Source: Paramicrosporidium saccamoebae KSL3 (taxonomy: Eukaryota; Fungi; Cryptomycota). From it: a stretch of 32,000 bases of DNA. The stretch covers positions 19,370-51,369 of the forward strand of contig MTSL01000208.1 in the NCBI GenBank assembly GCA_002794465.1. The letters run 5' to 3'. The notes beneath the pieces are model-generated. The model worked only from the letters and a program-made list of their open reading frames with translations. It had not been told where the DNA came from and did no database searches. Made by a program: the position numbers and the translations under genes. Position 1 is the first letter of the stretch. Every line of letters starts with the position of its first letter. Below are positions 2,428-29,726 of this stretch, piece after piece.

Positions 2428-4551
2428 ATGAAGATCAATCTACTGGTCATCACTGCGAAACTTCTGGCATTAACAACTGCCACCACTGTTCATCATCACA
2501 ACTACAATCGGGGACCCCTTCGTCCACAAATTGTCGTGATTAACCATCACTTTCATAATGCCGATACAGCCGGCATCTCTGGTGCGCATAACACTCGTAA
2601 CACTCATGGAGGGATGAGCGCAAATGCAAACGCTCCTAGTGCACCTGGTTCTTCTGGCGCCAAGTCGAACACTCCCAGTGCACCTGGTTCTTCTGGTGCA
2701 TTTAGTGTCCCTAATGCTAGCGCATCTGGTGCTTCTAGTGTCCCTAATGCTGGCGCATCTAGCGCCTCTAGTGCACCTAATACTGGTGCATCTAGCGCCT
2801 CTAGCGCACCTAGTACGCCTGCTGCACCTCACACTCCTGCTGCATCTACCGCTCCTGCTGCATCTAACGCTCCTGCTGCTGGTGCTTCCAGTACTCCCAA
2901 AGCTGCAAAGGCATCAAAGAACTCTCCGCCTACCGCGCAGTTCAAAGAAAACACCGCAAGCAGCCCTCCTGTGAAAGAACACAAGCTCACTGGTAGCGTA
3001 TTTGGTGCTAGTCATGCGGCTCCACCGGCAGCAGGTGCATCGAGTCAAGAAAAGAGCGCCACAAAGTCAAAAATTCCAGCTCCACCCGGACCGGCACCGA
3101 TTCTGAGCAAACCCAACAAGGCACCCAAGCCATGTGTCCCTGTTCCATCGTCAAATCAAAGTCAGACGAGCCCCACAAACGCCACTGCTGCCTCTACTCC
3201 AGCCCAGCAGGCAACAAAGTCTACTGTTCCCCCTCCACCTGGGCCTGCTCCAATCTTGAGTCAATGGAAGCCAAAGAAGGCCGCGCCCAATCCGAGTCCA
3301 GCCACTCCTTCTCAGGCTGCCGCTCCCGCTGCCACCAATTCTACGACTCCCATTCTGAACAAACCCAAAGGTTGCAAACCGATTAATGTCTCTGGCACTG
3401 TTCCGGCATCAGCTGCGCCAAGTGGAACAGCTTCTTCTGCAACTTCTGCGTCAAGCTCTGCTGCACCTGGATCTGCTGCGCCTGGATCTGCTACACCTGG
3501 CTCTGCTGCGCCCGCGACAAACACAACTGCAGCACCCGTTTCCTCCAACACTGCGACCAATACTACACGCACCAAGGATGACACGGCCCATCTAGTCGGT
3601 GATTACGTAAGCACAGCTAAAATGTTAAAGATTCTTCAAACACCAGGAGCTCCGCTGCCTTGGAAATGGCAGGAGCAGTGCTACAATAGCCGTGTCAGCC
3701 ATTGTGGACCAGTCTTCAAGACGGCTGCTCGGGATATCAATCTTTACGGGGCCGAGTTGGATACAAGTCTACGTGCACCGACCACCGTCTTCCCCAGTCC
3801 CACAGACTTGCGATTCCGCACATTGACTGCGGCAGGAGCTGTGCTGGGTGGAAAGCTGCCAGCCTTTAAGGACGAAACCATTCCGTATCATACTTATGCC
3901 GCCATGGAAATGCTCATTGGAACTGGACTGACACCGGTCGCCTCGGGTGAGAGTAGTGCCCAGAAAAAGGTGGTGAATGTTGCTCCGTTTGTGGCGTCCC
4001 GTGGGCAGCTCAAGACCCATCTGAGTCCCATTGTCCGTCTCGGACTGCACCGACTCGCTGCTGCCCTGCTTTCCCTCTCGAACACAAAGTTTACCTCCAT
4101 CGACGATGAACTTCGTGCTCTACTCGCGGATGCCCAGCATCAGCCCTTTACTCTCGCTGTCCTACTAAAGCATGTTGAGGGAGAGCAGTTGCGTCGCACC
4201 CTTTCCAAGGAACATCGGGCTCCACCGCTCCTGCAAGCCGGTATTTACCACGCTCTGACAGTCAACGTTCCTGACACGCTCAACTTGTGTCATCCGAATG
4301 CACAACTGCCTGCCATCTCCGTCCATGCCCATTTCCTGAAAAAGTATGGCAGCACGCTGCCGAGGATGAGGCAGATCGTGCTGGCTCGTGCCTTCTTGTA
4401 TCTAGTCTTTGGGGTTCCCTTCGACCGCTCCTACTGCAAGAATTGCGGCAATCCTAGGACTGCGTCCAAATCCACTGCAAGGCTCCTTGTTAATGGAATT
4501 CTGGCAAGCTATTGTCGTCCTCGTAGCAAGTATCACGTAGTAGTCAATTAA
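2428..4551 (+). CDS. Secreted Ala/Ser/Pro-rich repetitive protein with an unrecognised ~320-aa C-terminal domain (707 aa)
   Basis: Signal peptide MKINLLVITAKLLALTTA, His-rich start, about 330 aa of low-complexity repeats (APGSSG, NAGASSASSAP, PPPPGPAPIL x2, PGSAA x3), then a globular region with CxxC near the end. TATAAAG at 2391-2397. Confidence 0.85.
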   Translation: MKINLLVITAKLLALTTATTVHHHNYNRGPLRPQIVVINHHFHNADTAGISGAHNTRNTHGGMSANANAPSAPGSSGAKSNTPSAPGSSGAFSVPNASASGASSVPNAGASSASSAPNTGASSASSAPSTPAAPHTPAASTAPAASNAPAAGASSTPKAAKASKNSPPTAQFKENTASSPPVKEHKLTGSVFGASHAAPPAAGASSQEKSATKSKIPAPPGPAPILSKPNKAPKPCVPVPSSNQSQTSPTNATAASTPAQQATKSTVPPPPGPAPILSQWKPKKAAPNPSPATPSQAAAPAATNSTTPILNKPKGCKPINVSGTVPASAAPSGTASSATSASSSAAPGSAAPGSATPGSAAPATNTTAAPVSSNTATNTTRTKDDTAHLVGDYVSTAKMLKILQTPGAPLPWKWQEQCYNSRVSHCGPVFKTAARDINLYGAELDTSLRAPTTVFPSPTDLRFRTLTAAGAVLGGKLPAFKDETIPYHTYAAMEMLIGTGLTPVASGESSAQKKVVNVAPFVASRGQLKTHLSPIVRLGLHRLAAALLSLSNTKFTSIDDELRALLADAQHQPFTLAVLLKHVEGEQLRRTLSKEHRAPPLLQAGIYHALTVNVPDTLNLCHPNAQLPAISVHAHFLKKYGSTLPRMRQIVLARAFLYLVFGVPFDRSYCKNCGNPRTASKSTARLLVNGILASYCRPRSKYHVVVN
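2638..2830 (+). repeat. Coding tandem repeats (39-nt and ~30-nt units) in the Ala/Ser/Pro-rich protein
   Basis: agtgcacctggttcttctgg occurs twice; (t/c)ctagtg(t/ca)ccctaat(g/a)ct(a/g)g(c/t)gcatct-like units occur about 4 times. Confidence 0.7.
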
Positions 4552-4756: not shown

Positions 4757-5113
4757 TTAAACGTTAGTATTTATGAAATCGTCATATTCCTCGAGAGTGG
4801 TAAAATACAACGTGTGGGGGGTTAGTGAAATGATTGGATCATCAGATGTTCGATTAAGCAGTGATTCTTCATACTTGAAAATTCTACTCCCACTGCTATT
4901 TGTGAGTCCCACCGCTATAATCACCAATTCGTTTGGTTCGAACGGACAGAAAGCTTCGTGTCCTCCTGTCGGGAAATCTAGCTCAACGATCTCCCGGTCC
5001 TTGCCAAGGACCATTACTGAGCTAACATTATCAATACCCTCCCATGTGATGGTCGAGGCTTGCACAGAGGCGGCCAAGAGATATAAAAGTGATAAAAGAG
5101 TTTTAACGTGCAT
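4757..5113 (-). CDS. Small secreted protein, family A (118 aa)
   Basis: Likely start MHVKTLLSLLYLLAASVQA (ATG 5113) gives a 19-aa signal peptide matching the paralogs at 10305-12019. Mature part STITWEGIDNV...IISLTP...YDDF. Confidence 0.8.
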   Translation of the reverse strand: MHVKTLLSLLYLLAASVQASTITWEGIDNVSSVMVLGKDREIVELDFPTGGHEAFCPFEPNELVIIAVGLTNSSGSRIFKYEESLLNRTSDDPIISLTPHTLYFTTLEEYDDFINTNV

Positions 5114-5467
5114 GTCTTTTGTGGCGTTGGCAACGGCTATCGTAAAGGGTTCTTTAAAAAAAGACCAGGGCCCGTGGTGCTGTTTATGCAATCAAACTGG
5201 GCATTGACAGATAGTTAAATTGTTAGTGCCTAACTGTCGTGTCGATCTCCCGCGGCTACATACATTGGGGATTGCAGAATTATATACTACACCCCTTAAT
5301 ATGCTTGGCGTTCCTAGCATCAAATTACTAAAGTACAAGTACAATTGCTACATGGTAGAATCAAACGAAGACACCGTTTTCAGTTCGCCACTTTGGATTA
5401 TACATCTCCCGCACCCATCACCTTACCGCTTTTATATGCATTACGTATTGTACAACATGCAAAATAT

Positions 5468-10304: not shown

Positions 10305-10682
10305 CTACTGATATGCTCTTTCGCTGTCATCAATGGTTTGGTGCTGATGTGGTGCGTAAATAATGTACTCATCAGGGGTCAGTTCAATAACTGGGAGTTC
10401 CTTCACCACGTCGTAATAGTACCCAAATTGTGTGTCGATTGGGTACAATTTACCATCTCCAGGTTCTTCAAAGTATAATACAATACTTTTCAAGTCGGAG
10501 AGACGAACCGGAATTATACATGTGTGATCTCCCAGCTCAGGTGGATTGATTTTGTAGACCCTACTTCCGTATGCATTGACAGTTATTGACTTGACACCCT
10601 GAACCTTGCCCCACTTGAGGCGTGAAGCTTGTACATAAGCGTTCAGCAAAAACAGGGACGACAGACAAGCCACAATGTTCAT
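10305..10682 (-). CDS. Small secreted protein, family A (125 aa)
   Basis: Signal MNIVACLSSLFLLNAYVQA, mature SRLKWGKVQGV, C-terminal VIELTP. Confidence 0.75.
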   Translation of the reverse strand: MNIVACLSSLFLLNAYVQASRLKWGKVQGVKSITVNAYGSRVYKINPPELGDHTCIIPVRLSDLKSIVLYFEEPGDGKLYPIDTQFGYYYDVVKELPVIELTPDEYIIYAPHQHQTIDDSERAYQ

Positions 10683-10832: not shown

Positions 10833-11180
10833 CTATCCCTTTACAAAATCGTCATATGCAGGAGGACTGGTAACATACGGTGTATTAGGAGTCAATGAAA
10901 TGGTGGGCCTGCCAGACACTTGACTAAGCATGGAGTCGTTGTATTTGTAAAATCTAGACTCGCCTCCATCGGAAGTTAATACTACTACTTTACATTCATT
11001 CGGCACGAGGACGCACCATGCTCTATCCCCCGCAGGCGCAATATTTAGGACATAAGTTTCTCGGTTAATACTAGTGACAATTACTGAGATAATGTCTTCA
11101 ATGCCTGTCCACGTGATAATTAAAGCTTTCACGGAAGCGGCTAAAAGAGATACAAGTGTTAGAAGAGCTTTAAAGTTCAT
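10833..11180 (-). CDS. Small secreted protein, family A (115 aa)
   Basis: Signal MNFKALLTLVSLLAASVKA, mature LIITWTGIEDI...TISLTPNTPY...YDDF. Closest paralog of 4757-5113. Confidence 0.8.
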   Translation of the reverse strand: MNFKALLTLVSLLAASVKALIITWTGIEDIISVIVTSINRETYVLNIAPAGDRAWCVLVPNECKVVVLTSDGGESRFYKYNDSMLSQVSGRPTISLTPNTPYVTSPPAYDDFVKG

Positions 11181-11566: not shown

Positions 11567-12019
11567 TTACTGAGGAAGAGTTGTAGAGCCCCCTGACGAG
11601 GCATCGGTTTTTCCAGAATACGGACATTTGCCACTTTGGGCAGAAGGACGTCCGTATGGTTTTTCTCGGGCAAGCCGCTCACGAAGCTTACGAGGATCTC
11701 CGACATGATGTCTTTCAGGAGTCAAAGCAATGACGCTTCTGCCGCAAGGCGGCCGTTTGAGCATGGTTGCTTCATTGTATTCGTATTCCTCGACTTTCTC
11801 GTCAGCTCCAATTACCAATTCAATTTTTACCAACTCTTCGTGGTCAGTCAGTGTAGAGGTTAAGTAAACGTCTCCTTCAAGAGGTATCGAGCTAATCTTG
11901 CCGTCTTTAGTGGTTAGGACGACCAAAGTAACATTATCAATCCCCTTCCACGTCAAGAACGAGGCTTGTACAGAAGCAGCCAGCAGCGAAAAGAACGGGA
12001 GGAAGGCTGTAATATTCAT
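11567..12019 (-). CDS. Small secreted protein, family A with basic C-terminal extension (150 aa)
   Basis: Likely start MNITAFLPFFSLLAASVQA (ATG 12019), mature SFLTWKGIDNV...VIALTP. TATAAAG on the minus strand at 12052-12058. Confidence 0.8.
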   Translation of the reverse strand: MNITAFLPFFSLLAASVQASFLTWKGIDNVTLVVLTTKDGKISSIPLEGDVYLTSTLTDHEELVKIELVIGADEKVEEYEYNEATMLKRPPCGRSVIALTPERHHVGDPRKLRERLAREKPYGRPSAQSGKCPYSGKTDASSGGSTTLPQ

Positions 12020-12502
12020 ATCGGCACTGTGGCGTAGCCAAGTCTGCACAACTTTATAACAATGTCTCAATCTATCAGATATAGTAATTTATCAGATGCT
12101 TAATACAGCTGCCGATCAACTTTAAGCCAGCAAGTCCCATGCTTCAGTCTGTGGATTTTTTATCAAATATCAGCCAGGTGCATTAACCGGTTGTGCGAAT
12201 TAGAGCAACAACTCTGGCCGGAATTGGTTCTTTGTGGCTTCACATCACGTGACATTAGAGGGTTAGATGTGCACAGACTCGAGTCGCTGTGTTTTATCAG
12301 TATCTCGTGGGCCATTCTATAGACTCTACAACATGGTGACCGTATGTGTTAAATGGGATCGTCAGTTTCCAATACGCGCCTCCTTTCACAATTGGCCGAT
12401 CAACCCACTGCACAACATAGGATGTAGTCAAGACACTTTATCAGTGATCTGGTCTGAACTAGCACAATTTTCTATTTTATAATATGGTCCGAGTTTGTCA
12501 AA

Positions 12503-13300: not shown

Positions 13301-13420
13301 ATTGATGAAATCCCAATCCAGACTCGGCGTACTGATGAAATTTTAATCTAGACTCGGCGTACTGATGAAATTCCAATCTAGACTCGGTGTACTGATGAAA
13401 TTCCAATCTAGATTCAGTGT
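13301..13420. repeat. 30-bp x4 tandem minisatellite
   Basis: Consensus ACTGATGAAATTCCAATCTAGACTCGGTGT, four head-to-tail copies with 1-4 substitutions. Confidence 0.95.
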
Positions 13421-20021: not shown

Positions 20022-20177
20022 CCTCGAATACCCACCACTCTATCATAAATGTTAGAGAGCTATCCTCAAATACCCAACACTCTACCATAAATATCAAAGA
20101 GCCGCCCTCACATACCCGCCACTCTATCATAAGTGTTAGAGAGCTACCCTCAAATGCACGCCACTCCATCATAAATG
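20022..20177. repeat. 42-bp x~3.7 minisatellite between convergent homeobox and GWT1 genes
   Basis: Units start at 20022, 20064, 20106 and 20148; consensus cctcaaatacccgccactctatcataaatgttagagagctac. Confidence 0.9.
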
Positions 20178-21452: not shown

Positions 21453-21562
21453 CAATGATTAATTGAATTAATCTTTATGATGGTCCTAGTAAAGACTCGT
21501 TATCCTCCCGATCTGTAAGAGATGATACGATATAATATTGACTTACTCTCACGACCAACATC

Positions 21563-21626
21563 CTCTCATAACCAATGTACTCTCATAACCAATGTACTCT
21601 CATAATCAATGTAATCTCATAACCAA
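21563..21626. repeat. 17-bp x~3.8 tandem repeat upstream of the family B gene at 21745
   Basis: CTCTCATAACCAATGTA units at 21563, 21580, 21597 and 21614. Confidence 0.9.
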
Positions 21627-21744: not shown

Positions 21745-23374
21745 ATGCAGGTCTCACTATTTGTCCTTGCATTTTCAGCCGTGTACTGTTCGCTCCCAAA
21801 GGATGTTGGAGAGTATTGTCAACAAATTGAAAGCTCAATCTCTCAGGTCACAGACTGCCTTCAGAGCGGCGATACCGACGCTGCCCGTACTGCCTTCAGC
21901 AGAGCTGTGAGCCTCAAGTCCAGAACCGACGATAACGTTTACTCTAGTACTGTGCATTACTGTTAACTGATTCGTAGACTGGGAGGAAGATTTTACCGAG
22001 TTTAGCGAGGCCGCCGAGATGTTTGAAGCTCGGCTTGCAGGGCTGCGGAGTAGACTCTCTGAAGAGTCAAGCCCAGGGGAGAAATCTCTGGAAAATGACG
22101 AGGATGAAGGAGAGTTTCTTGAAGAGGGTGGTTCAGGTGAAGACGGTGGTTCGGCCGAGTTTCTAATGGACGAAGAGGAAAACAAAGGAAAAGGAAAAGA
22201 AAAGGGACCAGAAGAGCCCGTGATCCATCCCCAATTTCAAAGCAGAATTGAGACTCTCTTTGCAGACATCCCTAACCGTGGGGTAAGAGGCAGTGCAAGC
22301 GACGTCTCCGATGGCACTGGAGCGCAAAGCAGTAGCAGCTCGTCAAACCTAACAGGAGTGACACCACGGTCCTCTCGGGGACCAGGTGATATGTACGATT
22401 TTTCCTCCTCGGGGGCTGCACGAGGACTCCAAGGAAATCGAGTTCACGAAGGAAGCCAGCGAAACGATAACCTACTCTATCTGGGTAACGCATTGAGAGG
22501 CGGCCGCTCTTTTGGAAAATCCAGCGACACCTCTGACGAACGGTTCTTTGGCATGAGTAGTAGCAATCGCGTACATCCCAACAGTTCATTCGGTGGAGAG
22601 GGCAACGATTCAGACGACCTTACGAGCGGTATGGAGGACGAATCGCAATTTTCCAATCTGCTAAAGAGAGGGAGAAATCTGTCAGATCGCAGCCCGTATA
22701 GTAACCCGTTTGACAGCGGCAGAAATCATCACGATAGCGGAGCTAATTACGATTTTTTTGATCACCAAATCGACTTTATCACTCCCGGAGAAGTCAATCG
22801 TCCTAGCGAAAGTAGCGCTGGCTTTGCCTTATCGGCTCATCCCAACCCACTCGTTCTTCGACGTGATGTTTCGACCCCAAATCACCATCAACCAGCCTTT
22901 GTAGTGCCTCTTGGGTATGAAAGTTTCTCACACTTGACTCCAGAGCAGCAGTACGAGCACATGATGCTCCTAGAAAGTATGGAGGAGCACAGTGTCGAAA
23001 CACCCCGAGATGACACTACAACCACAACCACTACTACTACCACCACAACAACAACTACTACTACTACCACTACCACACCCATTGCCGACTTGAGACGACC
23101 AGCAGCAAAATTGGAGATTCCCGAAAAGTTTTACGCACTGCCAAACTCCAGAACTGACGAATCACTTGCACAGATTTACGAGAAATTGCAGGCAATCGAA
23201 GCGCACTTTTTCAAAAATGGCTCCCAAAAAGAGGCCGTGTGCAAGAGTCATTTGCCGCTGTTTAGCGAGTTGACGATGAGCATCCGACAGCTCCAAGGCT
23301 CTCTGGAGATTTTCCGTCCGTTGGGGGAGCCTATCTGGCAGAGTACCAACCCAAGAATTCTTACTAATCTATAG
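21745..23374 (+). CDS. Secreted protein, family B member 1 (532 aa; intron 21947-21977)
   Basis: Signal MQVSLFVLAFSAVYC. A 31-nt GTACTG...CGTAG phase-1 intron joins ORF 21745 to ORF 22019 in frame. Acidic/Ser-Gly linker, poly-Thr tract and C-terminal TDESLAQIY domain. Confidence 0.75.
23015..23077 (+). repeat. (ACN)21 coding trinucleotide tract, poly-Thr
   Basis: 21 consecutive Thr codons using ACT, ACC and ACA. Confidence 0.95.
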
Positions 23375-23542
23375 TTATGCAAAGTTATCACAAAAAGATA
23401 CAGATGCTGATTAATGACTTTTGTGGTGAACACACGTTATTGCACTTTATACCTCCCAACAAGGAGATTCGCTATTTTCGTGGAGTGGTGCGCCAGGTCA
23501 CAGTAAGGTCAAAGACGAAAAAGTAACTAGCACGACAAAGGT

Positions 23543-23592
23543 ATAACCATACCCATAACCACAACCATAAACACAACCACAAACACAAACAC
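23543..23592. repeat. Degenerate hexamer microsatellite A[TC]A[AC][AC]C x8 just 3' of UFD2
   Basis: ataacc ataccc ataacc acaacc ataaac acaacc acaaac acaaac. Confidence 0.8.
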
Positions 23593-23597
23593 ATAAA

Positions 23598-26312
23598 TTA
23601 GTCTCTTTTTAAGAATTGGGCAATGCGATCTGCAAGTTCCTTCTCAGGCACCGTCTCTTCCAAAGTAAGCGGTTTTCGGTTAAAGGGATCTGTCGGATCA
23701 TTCAACAAATGAGCCACAATGGTACTACGATCAACCACCATATTACTCGTCGGCAGTCGAACCGGCTCCCGCATCACCGTAAACATGAGCGGATCCAGAA
23801 ACTCGTCCGGTACTTCCATCTCCTCTGCTTGTTCTGCAATCGCCGCCACCCGCGTCGCAATTCGCTCCAATCGCGCAATGTCACTGGGCGTGCGGATCGA
23901 ATGGCGTCGGAGGATGGCTGTTGCTCGTGAAAACGTCTCCACGCTAAAGGAACGCGTGTCGCGTGCCACTGCCTGCAGGAATGTCTCACGACGACTCATA
24001 TTCAGCAACGATCCCACCAGCAGACGGAGCACCACCCGGGGCTCCCAATGGTACTTTTCCGGTGTCTGCACCTTTAGGTTGGTGCATTTGGGCCCCACCA
24101 TTTGCAAAATATTATGACACAACATGGCAGCCAGACGATCCACCACTTCTGGTCGCACAAATGGATCCAAAATCTCACTCGTAAAATACTCTAACATGTC
24201 GAGGGTGGAGGTTGCAAGCTGCAGATACGATTCACATTGTCGTTCCAAGGTCCGCAGGCCATTCTCCACCTCTTGGCGCTCATTAGGCGGCCGATTCGAC
24301 CAGGTGGAAAGTTCATTTTGTTTCGAGTGAATATCGGCCAATTTGCTAATCGATTCATCAAGCAGAAAGGTCACATCGTTCACCAGCAAATTCACAAATC
24401 GGATAAAGAGTTCGTTATCTTGGGAGCAGGCAATGATACGGGATCGATGGGAGGGATGGCCCCAACACGTCTTGAAAATCTTGGATATGTTATAGCGAAT
24501 ATTAAACTTGTCATAGAAAGATGAAGACGCCCCAGTGCTCTCCACTTCAATGTAGAAACGCATCAGCTTGCCGGCCAGCTGATCTACCACCATGGGATAT
24601 AGATCAAAATAGTGCTCCAGACGGGGATCAGTAAATCCATACAAAAAGTCGACAAATTTGGACCGCAAGTATGGGTTCTTCACATATGTCGGTCGATCCA
24701 ATAGAGTAACCATAAATTTGAGCAAAATGTCCAGCTGCTTGTCCAGCCAGAATTGAGGATGGAATCGGGAAATGAACAATGAAAACTCTCCCACACTCTC
24801 CACCAGGAACTCGGGCAGCATTGCAAATTTGACCGGTGGGGTAGATGTCAGCTCATCAGGTAGCAAAGTCAACATCCATCGCACAATGAACGTGACAAAG
24901 GAGAATCCATTCTCCATGAGGGTGGGATCCAACAGATAGACGTCAAGAGCCAATTTGGAATCCTTCATCTTCTGAATCTGTGCTTTGGCATTTTTAATAG
25001 CAAGATTGTTCATTGGATTTGTGCTTCCTTCGGCTTGGGATCGCTCAAACGAATCAAGCGCCTGCTGGGCTTCGCGGAGATTACGCAGCAGATCCATATA
25101 TTCGTTCATCATCCGGATGGGTCCCAGACGGAAATATTGCACAGTCAGGAAGAAGCACTCAGTGACGAAATTTGGGGCATAATTCGTCGTGTCTGCTTGC
25201 TGGATATACTCCTTGTACTCGTCATTGGTAGCATGATTCTTGGTCGCCTCGCTCACATTGATCCGACTGGAACGACAGTAATAATCTCCATCAATCATAC
25301 TAATTTTGGGCGATGAGGGTGACAAGAAGGGCTCGCAGAACTTTAGTAGCACTGCGTAACAATTTGCCAGGACACGATCGGGAGTCACTGTCTTGGGATC
25401 GACGTGCATCTTTAGACGATCATTGTTACGAGCAGCCAGCCATCCAAGCCAATCCAGCACCGATTCCCTTTCACCGCTCTTGATGAGGGAATAGAGGAGC
25501 TGGTGTGTTTTGCCAAAGTGCAGGTTCAGGGCCGTGCGCATAGAATAAAACGCCGACTCAACCTGGGGCACATATAGGGTCTCCCGATTGGGAAGCAGCT
25601 CCAGGAGGGGCCCTAATTCAATTGGATCAACCCCCACTGACAGCACTCCTCCCAAAATCGTATAGCCGCCCAAGTTAAGAGCATCGCAGTTGGCCTTCCA
25701 AGAATCGCTTGCCACCAGCAGTTTCCTAACCTCGGCATGCTGCAACAGAATATAGAGTGCATCCATCCCGGAAATGAAGCGTCCAAGCAGTCCCTCCTTC
25801 TGCATGCTGGCAACTATCCCCAATAGCACTGGCTCGAACAAATCGGCCATTTGCTCCCCGTCGTCTGAAAATCGACCCACCAATTCGCCCAGTAGTTTTG
25901 GCGATAGCAACTCTCCAGACCTGTCAATGCCCGTCAGCATTGGCACAAGGATCCTGGCACCGTATTCCTCTGCCATCGCAGGCTGACTGAACATTGTCGG
26001 CATCGTCGATACCAGCCCCATATACGAAACCAGCAGATATTTGAGTTCCGTGGCCAGTCGGTCATTCTGGCCGCTGCGCTCAATGCGATTGAAGCAGCCT
26101 ATCAGATACTCTACTACTAATCCCTCCTTGGGGGTCCAGCTGCTGAGTTTATCCATTAGAATTTGTTCCAGCTCATTACTATGTTCATCAAGCCTCAATT
26201 TTGCAATGCGCTCCTCCAACCCCGCAGGAACATCCTATACTGTTAATCTTTGTCCTTGTCGTACACTGCTGAGCTGAAGAACTGCGTTCAGCCGGCCACT
26301 CGCTTCCACCAT
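23598..26312 (-). CDS. UFD2: U-box E4 ubiquitin-chain elongation factor UFD2 (894 aa; intron 26235-26264)
   Basis: Ufd2P core (FVTECFFLT, NPYLRSK, QFYDK-like SFYDKFNIRY, FVNLLVNDVTFLLDES) and C-terminal U-box PDEFLDPLMFTVMREPV...DPFNRKPL. Short exon 1 MVEASGRLNAVLQLSS is joined by a 30-nt stop-containing intron. Confidence 0.95.
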
Positions 26313-26340
26313 CTCAACGAATAATCATTAAATCTTACTT

Positions 26341-26856
26341 ATGCTCGACTACATTCATCATGCACTGTTGCACGCTGTTCGTCTCTACGACTCGCTTCAT
26401 CACTGGCTACTACGGCAACAGTTAACGGGAGAGCTGGTAAAGGGGAAGCGGCCGGGCCATATAGTGATAATGGGAGACTCTAAACCCACAAGCCGCCATG
26501 TACAGCTGCTAAATGGCGAATGTCGCAGGCTTAATGTCCCACTCGTAACTGTGTTGGATCGCAATGTTACTGTCAATAATGAACCTGGTCTGGACGGCTG
26601 CGTCCAAATAAAGGGCTACGATCAGCCATTGCTGCGACATTTACAAAGCTCGACTGGACAACTCACATCCCTACCCGGAACGCCCGTAGATCTCGTGATA
26701 TCGACACAGCAAACGCTCAATCTCGGCGGGGTGGACTGTACTCAGTTGGGCTTTGCAGAGCTGTGCCATGTGCCAGAACACGAATTCATCACGGCAAATA
26801 TTTTTAGATATGCCATCTCTCAATATTCCATTTGTCGACAGAACTGCGGAAAGTGA
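26341..26856 (+). CDS. NUS1: NUS1/NgBR-like cis-prenyltransferase subunit, reduced (171 aa)
   Basis: KRPGHIVI, ECRRLNVPLVTVLD, PVDLVIS...QLGFAELCHV and C-terminal QNCGK (cf. NxG/RxG-K tail of Nus1/NgBR). Confidence 0.65.
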   Translation: MLDYIHHALLHAVRLYDSLHHWLLRQQLTGELVKGKRPGHIVIMGDSKPTSRHVQLLNGECRRLNVPLVTVLDRNVTVNNEPGLDGCVQIKGYDQPLLRHLQSSTGQLTSLPGTPVDLVISTQQTLNLGGVDCTQLGFAELCHVPEHEFITANIFRYAISQYSICRQNCGK

Positions 26857-27056
26857 ACGTTTGTAAATATATTTTCTTGTTCCAAATATTGAGAGTTGTC
26901 TTATCTATCTCAGCTATATAGCATAATTCTAGCCGATGGATAATGAGTGTCTCCATCACTAAAGATTTTCACGATTCAGCGTCCACCTCAGAGTACGTGA
27001 TGTATAGGACTTGTATTGCTCTGGTGACTTGCCGGGGTATGTCTCCTTGGGCCACA

Positions 27057-28467
27057 ATGATGTTGGTCTTTTTCATGCTTGTCGGCCTGGTTGTCTCGTC
27101 GTCTCTCTCCGAAAAGGACAAACATATCAGAGACATGTGTAATCAAGGTACACAAAGGATATACTACTGGTATTCATTATTCAGCACAGGACGCTATAGA
27201 GGTTCAAGATTTGAAACTAGGTGAAGAGTTTTTGAAGGTCGGCAGGAGCATAAGGGCTTCCTTGGATAAATTTCTAGAGGCCCAGAATGCGGGACCGATT
27301 GAAGCGCTTCTGAACCGTGAGAAATTGAAAACACTGGATGAAAAACTTGATGCGACAGCAGCGCTTTTGCTGGCTGCGCAGCTTGGAGTTGAACCCGTGG
27401 ACCGTTCTGGTCAATACGACAACGGCTTGTTGGATTCTTACGAAAGGAAAATTGAGGAGCATATTATAATGGCGCAAAAAGCCATTGAAGCCCAACACAT
27501 TGCACTGGCAAACGAGATGCTTTTAATTGCGAGAAATGCCAAGAAAGAGTGGGATCTGGAAGTGACACAGAGGGCGTCCAGCTCTAGTGGGGCACTGGTT
27601 AATAGATACCTGATGCCGTCGAATTTATTAGAGCAAAAGCTGAAAGATACATACATTAATCTGAAACGCGAAGAATTCAAGTCTCGGCGCAATGCTCCTC
27701 CAAATGAACAAAACAGCTCTCAAAGAGATGCCCCTCTTTCGGATATGGACTGCGCCTTGCTGGAACACTATAGAAAACAGGTCAATGGCATTACTTTGTC
27801 AGCGCGACAAATGCTTACGGTCAGTAACGATACAAATAGGGAGAAGATACTGGCAATGGTCCGCGATCAAAAATTTAAGCTTGACATGATGACGAATCCT
27901 AAAATGGAAGAGATTGGCGGTCAACTCCTCAAGGTGTATCGCGAGCAGACTATCTCAATGGATTATAAAATTAACGAGGCTCTTGGGATCTCAAATAACC
28001 CGAACAAAGGGGAAGAGCAAAAGGGGACAACCTATAATGAGCGCTTGGACGCGCAGCGATCTCGTTACCCGAGCATGTCGACAGCCAACAGAGTGCATGC
28101 AGCTCTATCTACAGCACAACAGAGACAACGCGCTCCCAAAACTGTCGCTGATGTAATAACTATCCCTGCAACGTTTTGTCGCTTGGAACCATATCAAACA
28201 GATGAATGGCTCGCAGCCATCTACAAGAATTTCAAACACCTGGCCACCAAATACCTTGCCAATGGGTGGGCTGCAATGGTTGCAGTATTGCCAAAGAAAA
28301 ACTGTAGTCTGATTGTAGCAGTCTTTAGAAACGTGGTAGTATGTCTGCAGAACATTCAACAGATTCTGCCAGAATTCTACGGTGAGGCTGTCTCTGCCGA
28401 CATTAACCGTTTAATCGGAAATTATTACTCAAACTTGCAAAGGGTTGCCGAGAAGATGAGGGCTTGA
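27057..28467 (+). CDS. Secreted protein, family B member 2 (~457 aa; intron 27148-27184; alternative ATG 27039)
   Basis: Signal MMLVFFMLVGLVVSSS lies in the frame of ORF 26943. A 37-nt GTACAC...TTCAG phase-1 intron joins it to the frame of ORF 27079. Two copies of the 28-aa helical module; C-terminal TDEWLAAIY domain. Confidence 0.75.
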
Positions 28468-28510
28468 CAATAAAGCAAGAATCTTTGTGTGAGATTTGTG
28501 CAAGTTTGTA

Positions 28511-28598
28511 TTCGTAGTCATGGCACGTTATTCGTCATCATGACACATTCGTAATCATGACACGTTCGTAATCATGACACGTTCGTAATCATGGCCCG
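28511..28598. repeat. 17-bp x5 tandem repeat upstream of the family B gene at 28644
   Basis: TTCGTAATCATGACACG units at 28511, 28531, 28548, 28565 and 28582; palindromic TCATGA core. Confidence 0.92.
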
Positions 28599-28635
28599 CT
28601 ATTGAAGATTGAATTGGGGTCCCAGCATCAACGCG

Positions 28636-28643
28636 CCCTGGTC
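28636..28643 (+). promoter_or_regulatory. CCCTGGTC motif abutting the ATG (other copies at 5163-5170, 10709-10716, 31785-31792 and 31957-31964 on the minus strand)
   Basis: Same 8-mer found five times by eye, all outside the called coding regions; four lie within 55 nt upstream of a same-strand ATG. Confidence 0.4.
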
Positions 28644-29504
28644 ATGAGGCTCGAAGTTGCTATATTGTTCGTACCATTCGCAATATGCTCGGCTGTTCTG
28701 ACGCATTATGAGCAAAGTTTCAGTCAGAGAATCATGGCCAGTACTATCTCTTGCCATTATTGATCAATAGTCAAAAAAGATATTGAAGCGTGGGAAACTG
28801 AGCGGGGATTTGACCATATGCAACGTGCCTACCGTCGGAAAGGAGAACTTGATACAGAATTCTTTGCTGAAGACCCGACAAAGGAGGAGATACAGCGGTG
28901 GGAGCGCCTCTCCGAGTCAGTGTTGAGCGAGCTGAGTGAATTGGCTGTCGTCTTGGGCTATTTCCCGGAAGAGTGTGGGCCAACAGCAGGACAATATCAA
29001 GAGACTGTCATCCCAAGCGAGAGAAGGCATCAGACGACGACCTCCAGGTCAGGTATAGAGAATCGCAAAGAAAGAGCGTCTACTTCAAGAAAAAGGAAGC
29101 CCCGAGAGGATAATAATACCTCGAGAAAGAAGCCGAGGACTGACGCGTACGGCTTCCCCAGCGCCGAGAGTGAGCAGGACGATAGTTTTGACGAGGGTGT
29201 GGATGAATTCATTCCTCCTAACCACAACAATCGGGCTACGAGAATGAACGCTTACAATGTCATCTGTCCAGCGGTGAGGTACACTATAAAAGATTACAAA
29301 ACAGATGATCTCCTACAGAGCATATACTCAACTTATGAACAACTTGCGGAACTTTTTCGAAACGCCAAGACCAAGAATGACATCTGCGGGCCTCATGGAA
29401 TCTATTTCGACCAGCTTTACGGCTATTACACGCAGTATAAGGTTGTCTTATACGATGCATTTCCACTCGTTGCCAAGGATCTCTGGTTGAGTAAGACCAG
29501 GTAA
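28644..29504 (+). CDS. Secreted protein with bipartite NLS, family B member 3 (276 aa; intron 28741-28770)
   Basis: Exon 1 MRLEVAILFVPFAICSAVLTHYEQSFSQRIMA is too short for the ORF track. A 30-nt GTACTA...AATAG phase-1 intron joins it to ORF 28818. RKRKPREDNNTSRKKPR; C-terminal TDDLLQSIY domain. Confidence 0.75.
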
Positions 29505-29726
29505 AGCGGCTAATGGCGTAGTGGTTGGACTGTACTACCAAAAGATTGGATGTGTCATCGACAAATTTTGCAACGCCAAAGCGCAACCAACCGACACTGG
29601 TCCGAGTGGCTCCAAGCCAACTCGTGACAAAAAATAAGGTGTCACAGCCAAAGATAATGCCGTGAAGTTTATAAAGACCCCTCATTAACTTTCCCGGCCT
29701 GTAGATACGATATACTATCTCACAAT

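Follow-up and report, generated by a model that had tools for sequence, protein, structure and literature searches.

Three neighbouring genes of Paramicrosporidium saccamoebae raise the question of whether proteins that look unrelated in an open reading frame (ORF) track can belong to one family, and of where the members of such a family would act. The genus occupies a basal position on the lineage that leads to Microsporidia. P. saccamoebae itself belongs to the Rozellomycota, lives as a parasite within the nucleus of Saccamoeba, and forms microsporidia-like spores with a polar filament. The genes, here named A, B, and C and all encoded on the plus strand, lie in a 32,000-nucleotide (nt) stretch of contig MTSL01000208.1 (strain KSL3, genome MTSL00000000, assembly GCA_002794465.1), which we call the window and to which all coordinates refer. 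A first-pass annotation of the window had proposed that the three are a hidden family of secreted proteins with a common C-terminal domain, and in pointing to Rozellomycota it was correct. Our comparisons indicate that A, B, and C are indeed old paralogues, a real family that the ORF track conceals.

The motif spacings that had drawn attention to the three ORFs (P-x10-TD, C-x6-F, and F-x13-L) are present where they had been placed. Identity among A, B, and C within the shared domain is about 20-25%, and BLASTP connects A with B at E = 1.4e-4, A with C at 1.1e-5, and B with C at 1e-3. Smith-Waterman alignments reach z scores of 6.8-11.7 against 2000 shuffles, and 0/2000 shuffles attained the real score, so the comparison with shuffled controls called for at the outset comes out as significant. 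We also searched across domain types (A, B, and C, named after the genes) with profiles built from one type and its orthologues, expressing E-values for a nominal database of 1e6 sequences. With the A-type profile, E-values were 2e-7 to 4e-12 for the C types and 1e-4 for B; with the C-type profile, they were 5e-15 for A and 1e-5 for B. BLASTP, shuffles, and profile searches thus agree on a three-member family; no fourth copy of the domain was found in the window. Two details of the original description changed. The domain, taken to be of about 75 amino acids (aa), measures about 105-115 residues and continues into the terminal exons of A and C. Furthermore, the supposedly conserved Cys of C-x6-F is present in A, B, and C, and is replaced by His in the orthologue of B.

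How far does the family extend beyond the window? An exhaustive HMMER search of 1.84 billion protein cluster representatives matched only the GenBank versions of C and B and four real relatives, all of them metagenomic: an orthologue of B (P0015; JGI 3300042204, locus L007), an orthologue of A (P0016 and P0023; JGI 3300042204 and 3300042205, loci L006 and L008), and two C-type proteins, P0019 (Logan SRR26282673, locus L005) and P0020 (Logan DRR438482, locus L004). Four other candidates that looked strong (P0014, P0017, P0018, and P0021) were rejected as bacterial HYR-like or TPR repeat proteins in which a 25-residue stretch matched up to 20 times, that is, as summed repeat noise. Word-indexed protein searches, run with profiles of 3 and later of 7 domain sequences, recovered P0019 at most. 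An alignment of all domain types contained no segment conserved well enough for a pattern, and scans of JGI metagenome DNA with A-type and B-type patterns gave no confirmed match.

Because synteny is kept, we regard the relatives as true orthologues. The A orthologue and UFD2 converge on each other, just like gene A and UFD2 (23598-26219, minus strand) in the window. P0020 adjoins MscS, BUD31, and PTPLA genes, as gene C does, and L007 preserves the B-C tandem: directly after the B orthologue comes the signal-peptide exon of a C orthologue. At loci L001 and L002 of more distant relatives, where UFD2 is 57-61% identical, no domain copy was found around UFD2, and a Dicer-like gene occupies the place of gene A. 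The profile search beyond the window that the first pass had suggested has therefore yielded orthologues in at least three other genomes, all of relatives of the same lineage. By these searches, the family is confined to Paramicrosporidium and close uncultured relatives; such restriction to a pathogen lineage is a mark of secreted-effector families.

Rapid change accompanies this narrow distribution. In the species represented by L008, L006, and L007, UFD2 is 92% identical to that of the window, and A (over the alignable part) and B are each 39% identical. In the L004 species, MscS is 92%, BUD31 76%, and PTPLA 64% identical, and the positional C orthologue 27%. The family therefore diverges far faster than its housekeeping neighbours (27-39% versus 64-92%). 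The domain is the best-kept part of the proteins, with 49-59% identity between orthologues for A and B.

Corrected gene models give proteins of 572 aa (A), 457 aa (B), and 310 aa (C). In gene A, exon 1 (21745-21946) begins with the ATG that GenBank also uses and encodes a signal-peptide-like start, MQVSLFVLAFSAVYC, followed by a helical N-region. Intron 1 (21947-21977; 31 nt, phase 1, GTAC..TTAAC..TAG) joins it to exon 2 (21978-23342), which holds an acidic, Ser/Gly-rich, probably disordered region, a run of 20 Thr, and, from 23117, the first part of the domain. After intron 2 (23343-23374; 32 nt, phase 1, GTAC..ACTAAT..TAG; GTACCAACCCAAGAATTCTTACTAATCTATAG), the terminal exon (23375-23526) completes the domain with YH-x6-INDFC (to about 23424) and adds a basic tail before the stop codon. 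Gene B consists of exon 1 (27057-27147), encoding the signal-peptide-like MMLVFFMLVGLVVSSSLS, an intron (27148-27184; 37 nt, phase 1, GTAC..CAG), and exon 2 (27185-28467), which encodes a conserved helical middle and the shared domain at 28162-28464 without a second intron. Gene C opens with exon 1 (28644-28740), encoding the signal-peptide-like MRLEVAILFVPFAICSAVL, and intron 1 (28741-28770; 30 nt, phase 1, GTAC..TAG). Its exon 2 (28771-29490) encodes a helical hairpin and a disordered stretch in which K/R clusters occur (RKRKPR..RKKPR), and the domain sets in at 29265; beyond intron 2 (29491-29521; 31 nt, phase 1, GTAAG..GCTAAT..TAG; GTAAGACCAGGTAAAGCGGCTAATGGCGTAG), the terminal exon (29522-29637) finishes the domain with YY-x6-IDKFC (to about 29571) and carries a tail and the stop codon.

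These models keep the first introns of 31, 37, and 30 nt that had been predicted for A, B, and C: all are GT..AG and phase 1, and the spliced lengths to which they led (1599, 1374, and 831 nt) are in frame. The ends assigned to A and C had to be moved. The stops used before (23372-23374 and 29502-29504) sit inside the second introns, the former being the last three bases of A intron 2 and the latter a TAA enclosed by C intron 2; the true ends are 23526 and 29637, and gene C therefore runs beyond 29504, where the feature had been closed. The GenBank models depart further. That of A (512 aa) terminates at a stop inside intron 2, and that of C (228 aa) has neither the signal exon nor the terminal exon. 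The model of B (P0013, 641 aa) is fused to an upstream 171-aa ORF and uses the first-pass donor with an acceptor 15 nt further on. The start of gene B is ambiguous, with in-frame ATGs at 26943, 27039, and 27057. The upstream ORF (26341-26856, plus strand) has its own stop codon, and P0013 bridges the two by an atypical intron, some 80 nt long, that opens with GTGA. The ORF may resemble a NUS1-type prenyltransferase subunit, an idea that gained no support from Pfam or PDB, where the ORF had no match.

Are introns this short real? The first introns of A, B, and C each start with GTAC and end in YAG. L004 (38 nt), L005 (32 nt), and L007 (29 nt) carry the C-type intron 1 with codon and phase unchanged; its sequence varies among the relatives, and the hydrophobic first exon is conserved in all three (75% identical in L007). 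The B-type intron of L007 (31 nt) agrees with that of gene B in codon and phase. There, exon 1 reads ..QLITIENSVGRLFSE|AQGAI, the contig ending before any signal peptide, and since the residues after the intron match (AQGAI versus AQDAI), the acceptor first assigned to gene B is favoured over that of GenBank. Intron 1 of gene A has no counterpart for comparison, the contigs of the orthologue being cut at the 5' end.

The second introns came to light through the orthologues. We revised the stop of gene A because its orthologue continues past that point, and the continuation is encoded just downstream in another frame. A, C, L005 (29 nt), and L006 (33 nt) all have a phase-1 intron 2 one residue past a conserved Trp; P0020, gene B, and the B orthologue lack it. 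The 33-nt intron of L006 stays in frame, which is why the metagenome gene caller read through it. Once spliced, the sequences align gap-free with the intronless P0020 through W-x5-Y[YFH]-x6-I-[ND]-x-[FY]-C. Taken singly, each terminal exon aligns with the contiguous tail of P0020 at z 4.2-9.0, with at most 14/5000 shuffles equally good, and those of A and C bring a second conserved Cys to the domain. On this comparative evidence, with intron positions kept and intron sequences differing, we take the introns to be real.

A gene outside the family leads to the same view. In SMC3 (minus strand), splicing out a 30-nt GTAC..TAG intron at 10086-10057 restores the Walker-A N-terminus, and introns of 30 nt are therefore real in the P. 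saccamoebae genome. In a pattern scan, UFD2 and other genes proved to have similar short-intron elements at their 5' ends. In GenBank, UFD2 (26312-26235) and probably SMC3 (10177-10057), both on the minus strand, miss a short first exon joined by a 30-nt GTAC..TAG intron; in UFD2, joining this exon restores MVEASGRLNAV.. as the N-terminus.

It may be objected that both similarity and introns are products of chance or annotation, the ORFs being unrelated or even non-coding. Pairwise identities are only 25-33%, the B-C comparison by itself reaches no better than E = 1e-3, and the GenBank models differ from the first-pass and the corrected models alike. Cross-type profile E-values down to 5e-15, together with syntenic orthologues in at least three other genomes that keep the intron positions and differ in intron sequence, make this very improbable.

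Next to the gene structure, the fold of the domain bears on function. The AlphaFold2 (AF2) model of the domain, with a predicted local distance difference test score (pLDDT) of 79 and a predicted template modelling score (pTM) of 0.65, shows an extended N-terminal segment carrying an invariant Pro, and helices at residues 22-41, 45-73, and 78-103. The model of full-length C has an N-terminal helical hairpin, a disordered middle, and the C-terminal bundle. In the A and C types, the Cys of C-x6-F starts helix 2 and the terminal Cys ends helix 3. In an up-and-down bundle both would lie at the same end, so a disulfide is plausible and, in these two types, would probably form.

No Pfam-A family scored above its gathering cut-off with the full proteins or the 7 domain sequences (best E 0.01-0.2, each with a single member). 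Foldseek comparison of two models with PDB and a viral library gave nothing below E 1; the top neighbours were FAT, MIT, and Habc bundles (E 2.9-10, template modelling scores 0.3-0.6, identity 3-20%). The structure prediction and fold comparison recommended in the first pass thus end in a three-helix bundle with no significant fold match, and the domain, which the first pass did not recognise, stays without a significant match in Pfam, PDB sequences, or Foldseek. The closest approach was a PDB sequence-profile search, in which human interferon-beta (1au1) appeared at a borderline E of 0.003 and a fish type I interferon (3piw) at 0.17, both in the same register. Type I interferons, which are class II helical cytokines, share with the family the P-x17-IY pattern followed by two helices, and they are, as is predicted for the family, secreted helical proteins with one disulfide. 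A remote kinship would explain these matches. On the other hand, interferons have five helices and the AF2 model three, no cytokine appeared among the Foldseek matches, and interferons are to our knowledge confined to vertebrates. We consider such a kinship extremely improbable and treat the resemblance as chance.

At the other end of the proteins, each has a single N-terminal hydrophobic stretch (12-residue hydropathy 2.2-3.1) and no further membrane-like segment. A signal-peptide-like hydropathy profile fits A, B (its ambiguous start aside), C, and two orthologues, and by this profile a short phase-1 intron does join a signal-peptide-like exon in all three genes, as had been predicted. The modular layout envisaged for them survives in part. 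The signal exon and the C-terminal domain remain, the latter longer than assumed; the conserved N-module does not, its similarity among A, B, and C being non-significant (z 0.5, 2.1, and -1.5). The description of the middles as unrelated low-complexity linkers suits A and C, and fails for B, whose middle is 39% identical to that of its orthologue over 439 aa.

The middle regions are each of their own kind. That of A is acidic, Ser/Thr-rich, and mucin-like. Its 20-Thr run (23014-23077) is an imperfect ACT/ACC/ACA repeat, and since the orthologue has only 5 Thr, the length of the tract is unstable between close relatives. The middle of B is helical and conserved. Its residues of about 110-270 (27400-27900), like those of the orthologue, seem to be built from a unit some 40 residues long, Y-x2-K-[IQ]-x..A-Q-x-A-I..A..L..AR, in 2-3 copies, and with an off-register BLAST match between B and L007 (E 0.09) an internal repeat in B is possible. 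The middle of C is predicted to be disordered and carries K[KR]x[KR] clusters that resemble nuclear-localisation signals, present in 3/3 C-type proteins. Overall, the three proteins contain 3.2-5.3% Pro and 3.6-7.2% Lys, with isoelectric points of 5.0, 8.6, and 6.1.

Where, then, would the family act? We lean, with moderate confidence, towards a lineage-restricted, fast-evolving secreted family that acts outside the parasite cell and uses the shared bundle as a common module. The lineage restriction and the very fast divergence relative to the flanking genes speak for a host-facing role, and the effector role first suggested for A, B, and C is, from what their sequences offer, plausible. Under such a scheme, the three proteins would enter the endoplasmic reticulum by way of a cleavable N-terminal signal peptide carried on the small first exon. 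Binding or assembly would fall to the shared bundle, and each paralogue would owe its particular task or specificity outside the parasite cell, whether in the host amoeba nucleus or in the spore envelope, to its variable regions.

Several points weigh against this scheme. Secretion is predicted from hydropathy, a single line of evidence. If B starts at 26943, its hydrophobic stretch lies 38 residues in, and GenBank joins B to the upstream ORF. Exact look-ups of eight spliced A/B/C variants, the corrected and the first-pass versions among them, in a collection of 15 billion proteins found none present. Fast divergence is expected of any largely disordered protein. The Cys pair is not a feature of the B type, both Cys being missing from the B orthologue. 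Further, the AF2 models draw on an alignment of only 7 sequences, and a three-helix bundle carries no specific hint of function.

The stability of the family could also mean that the three proteins stay in the parasite's own secretory pathway or on its surface, as lineage-specific residents with no direct contact with the host. Each paralogue has a stable positional orthologue, the relatives have added no member to the three, and the domain is kept at the 49-59% identity noted above for A and B. Residence of this kind sits poorly with an overall divergence that is extreme compared with neighbouring genes, and neither a retention signal nor a membrane anchor is visible in the proteins. We judge it improbable.

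The favoured reading, action outside the parasite cell, has a more specific form that we offer tentatively, as a less likely possibility: the proteins may be part of the polar-filament or spore-envelope proteome, or the C type, with its K/R clusters, may be released into the host nucleus and act on host chromatin. Taken as a structural proposal in its own right, A, B, and C would be parts of the spore, wall or polar filament, in which the bundle assembles or cross-links and the Thr-rich stretch of A forms a glycosylated coat. Signal peptides, the conserved Cys pair, the 20-Thr run, the B-C tandem, and fast divergence would all suit such parts. Microsporidian PTP1 and PTP2 share such general traits, being proteins with a signal peptide, Cys, and Thr-rich sequence, encoded by neighbouring genes, and quick to change. 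The spores of P. saccamoebae have a polar filament, yet none of its proteins could be identified by homology; the authors of the genome blamed rapid evolution, and their own polar-filament protein (PFP) hidden Markov models had no match in the proteome. The structural proposal stays live because these proteins are still to be named, probably as a consequence of fast evolution. Evidence from the proteins themselves is less favourable: no polar-tube or spore-wall Pfam family matched at E<=1, the Pro and Lys contents given above are unlike those of PTP1 (Pro-rich) or PTP2 (Lys-rich and basic), and what a spore wall would gain from the nuclear-localisation-like clusters of C is not obvious. We hold a structural role of this kind to be rather unlikely.

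With these weights, the three genes form a short candidate list for host manipulation or the invasion apparatus. If the spore, filament, or nuclear reading were true, they would provide a first molecular handle on invasion or manipulation by a pre-microsporidian intranuclear parasite, and the three-helix bundle, stapled by a disulfide, would stand as a novel module for assembly or targeting. There is also a consequence for annotation. Public models overlook the 30-nt introns, with the result that signal-peptide and terminal exons are lost and one gene is fused to its neighbour. Since annotation misses such tiny introns, secretome counts for the P. saccamoebae genome are probably too low, and the intron rule GTA[CA]..CTAAT..YAG is usable for re-annotating the genome.

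The remainder of the window is gene-dense and holds ordinary eukaryotic genes, namely SMC3, citrate synthase, a DEAD-box helicase, a homeobox gene, GWT1, UFD2, an MscS-like channel, and BUD31. A separate paralogous family of small proteins (about 115-170 aa) is encoded on the minus strand at 4757-5191, 10305-10682, 10833-11180, and 11567-12070. Its members have signal-peptide-like N-termini, e.g., MNFKALLTLVSLLAASVKA, and match one another in BLASTP at E 4e-5 to 7e-25; they probably correspond to family A of the first pass. A 707-aa ORF (2428-4551, plus strand) has a signal-peptide-like start and then a long Ala/Ser/Pro-rich tandem-repeat region (Tandem Repeats Finder, 2703-2879 and 3446-3512); its C-terminal half is non-repetitive, and it resembles another secreted mucin-like protein. 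Two window ORFs that were looked up exactly were absent from the protein collection. Intergenic spacers, including those that flank A, B, and C, are often filled by short tandem repeats with units of 6-42 nt in 3-8 copies (13303-13412, 20022-20177, 21544-21626, 23543-23593, and 28509-28593). The spacers of the relatives are also repeat-filled, with unrelated units (L004, 1-180; L005, 1190-1310; L006, 900-1060).

How does the family compare with known systems? In size and three- or four-helix topology, its domain is similar to FAT of focal adhesion kinase, MIT, and the SNARE Habc domain, which are typically protein-binding modules. All of these are cytosolic and have neither signal peptide nor disulfide, and the likeness in Foldseek is non-significant. 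With PTP1 and PTP2, the family has in common a signal peptide (predicted for A, B, and C), genes that lie side by side on one strand, conserved cysteines, a Thr-rich sequence open to O-glycosylation, and a pace of evolution at which homology searches fail. It differs from them in that no profile matches, A, B, and C are neither Pro-rich nor Lys-rich, and a helical C-terminal domain has not been described in polar tube proteins. Microsporidia also have lineage-specific secreted or host-exposed families, such as the large NemLGF groups of Nematocida. Like A, B, and C, these combine a signal peptide (in A, B, and C a predicted one), a conserved module with variable regions, a narrow clade, and rapid change; unlike them, they are expanded and variable in copy number, whereas the present family has only three members, and each keeps a syntenic orthologue. 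No relation of A, B, and C to known families was detectable in sequence or Pfam, the NemLGF likeness being one of general traits and not of compared sequences. Set beside the expanded effector families of many parasites, A, B, and C form a small family with stable synteny. They are a new orphan family, built around a previously undescribed domain.

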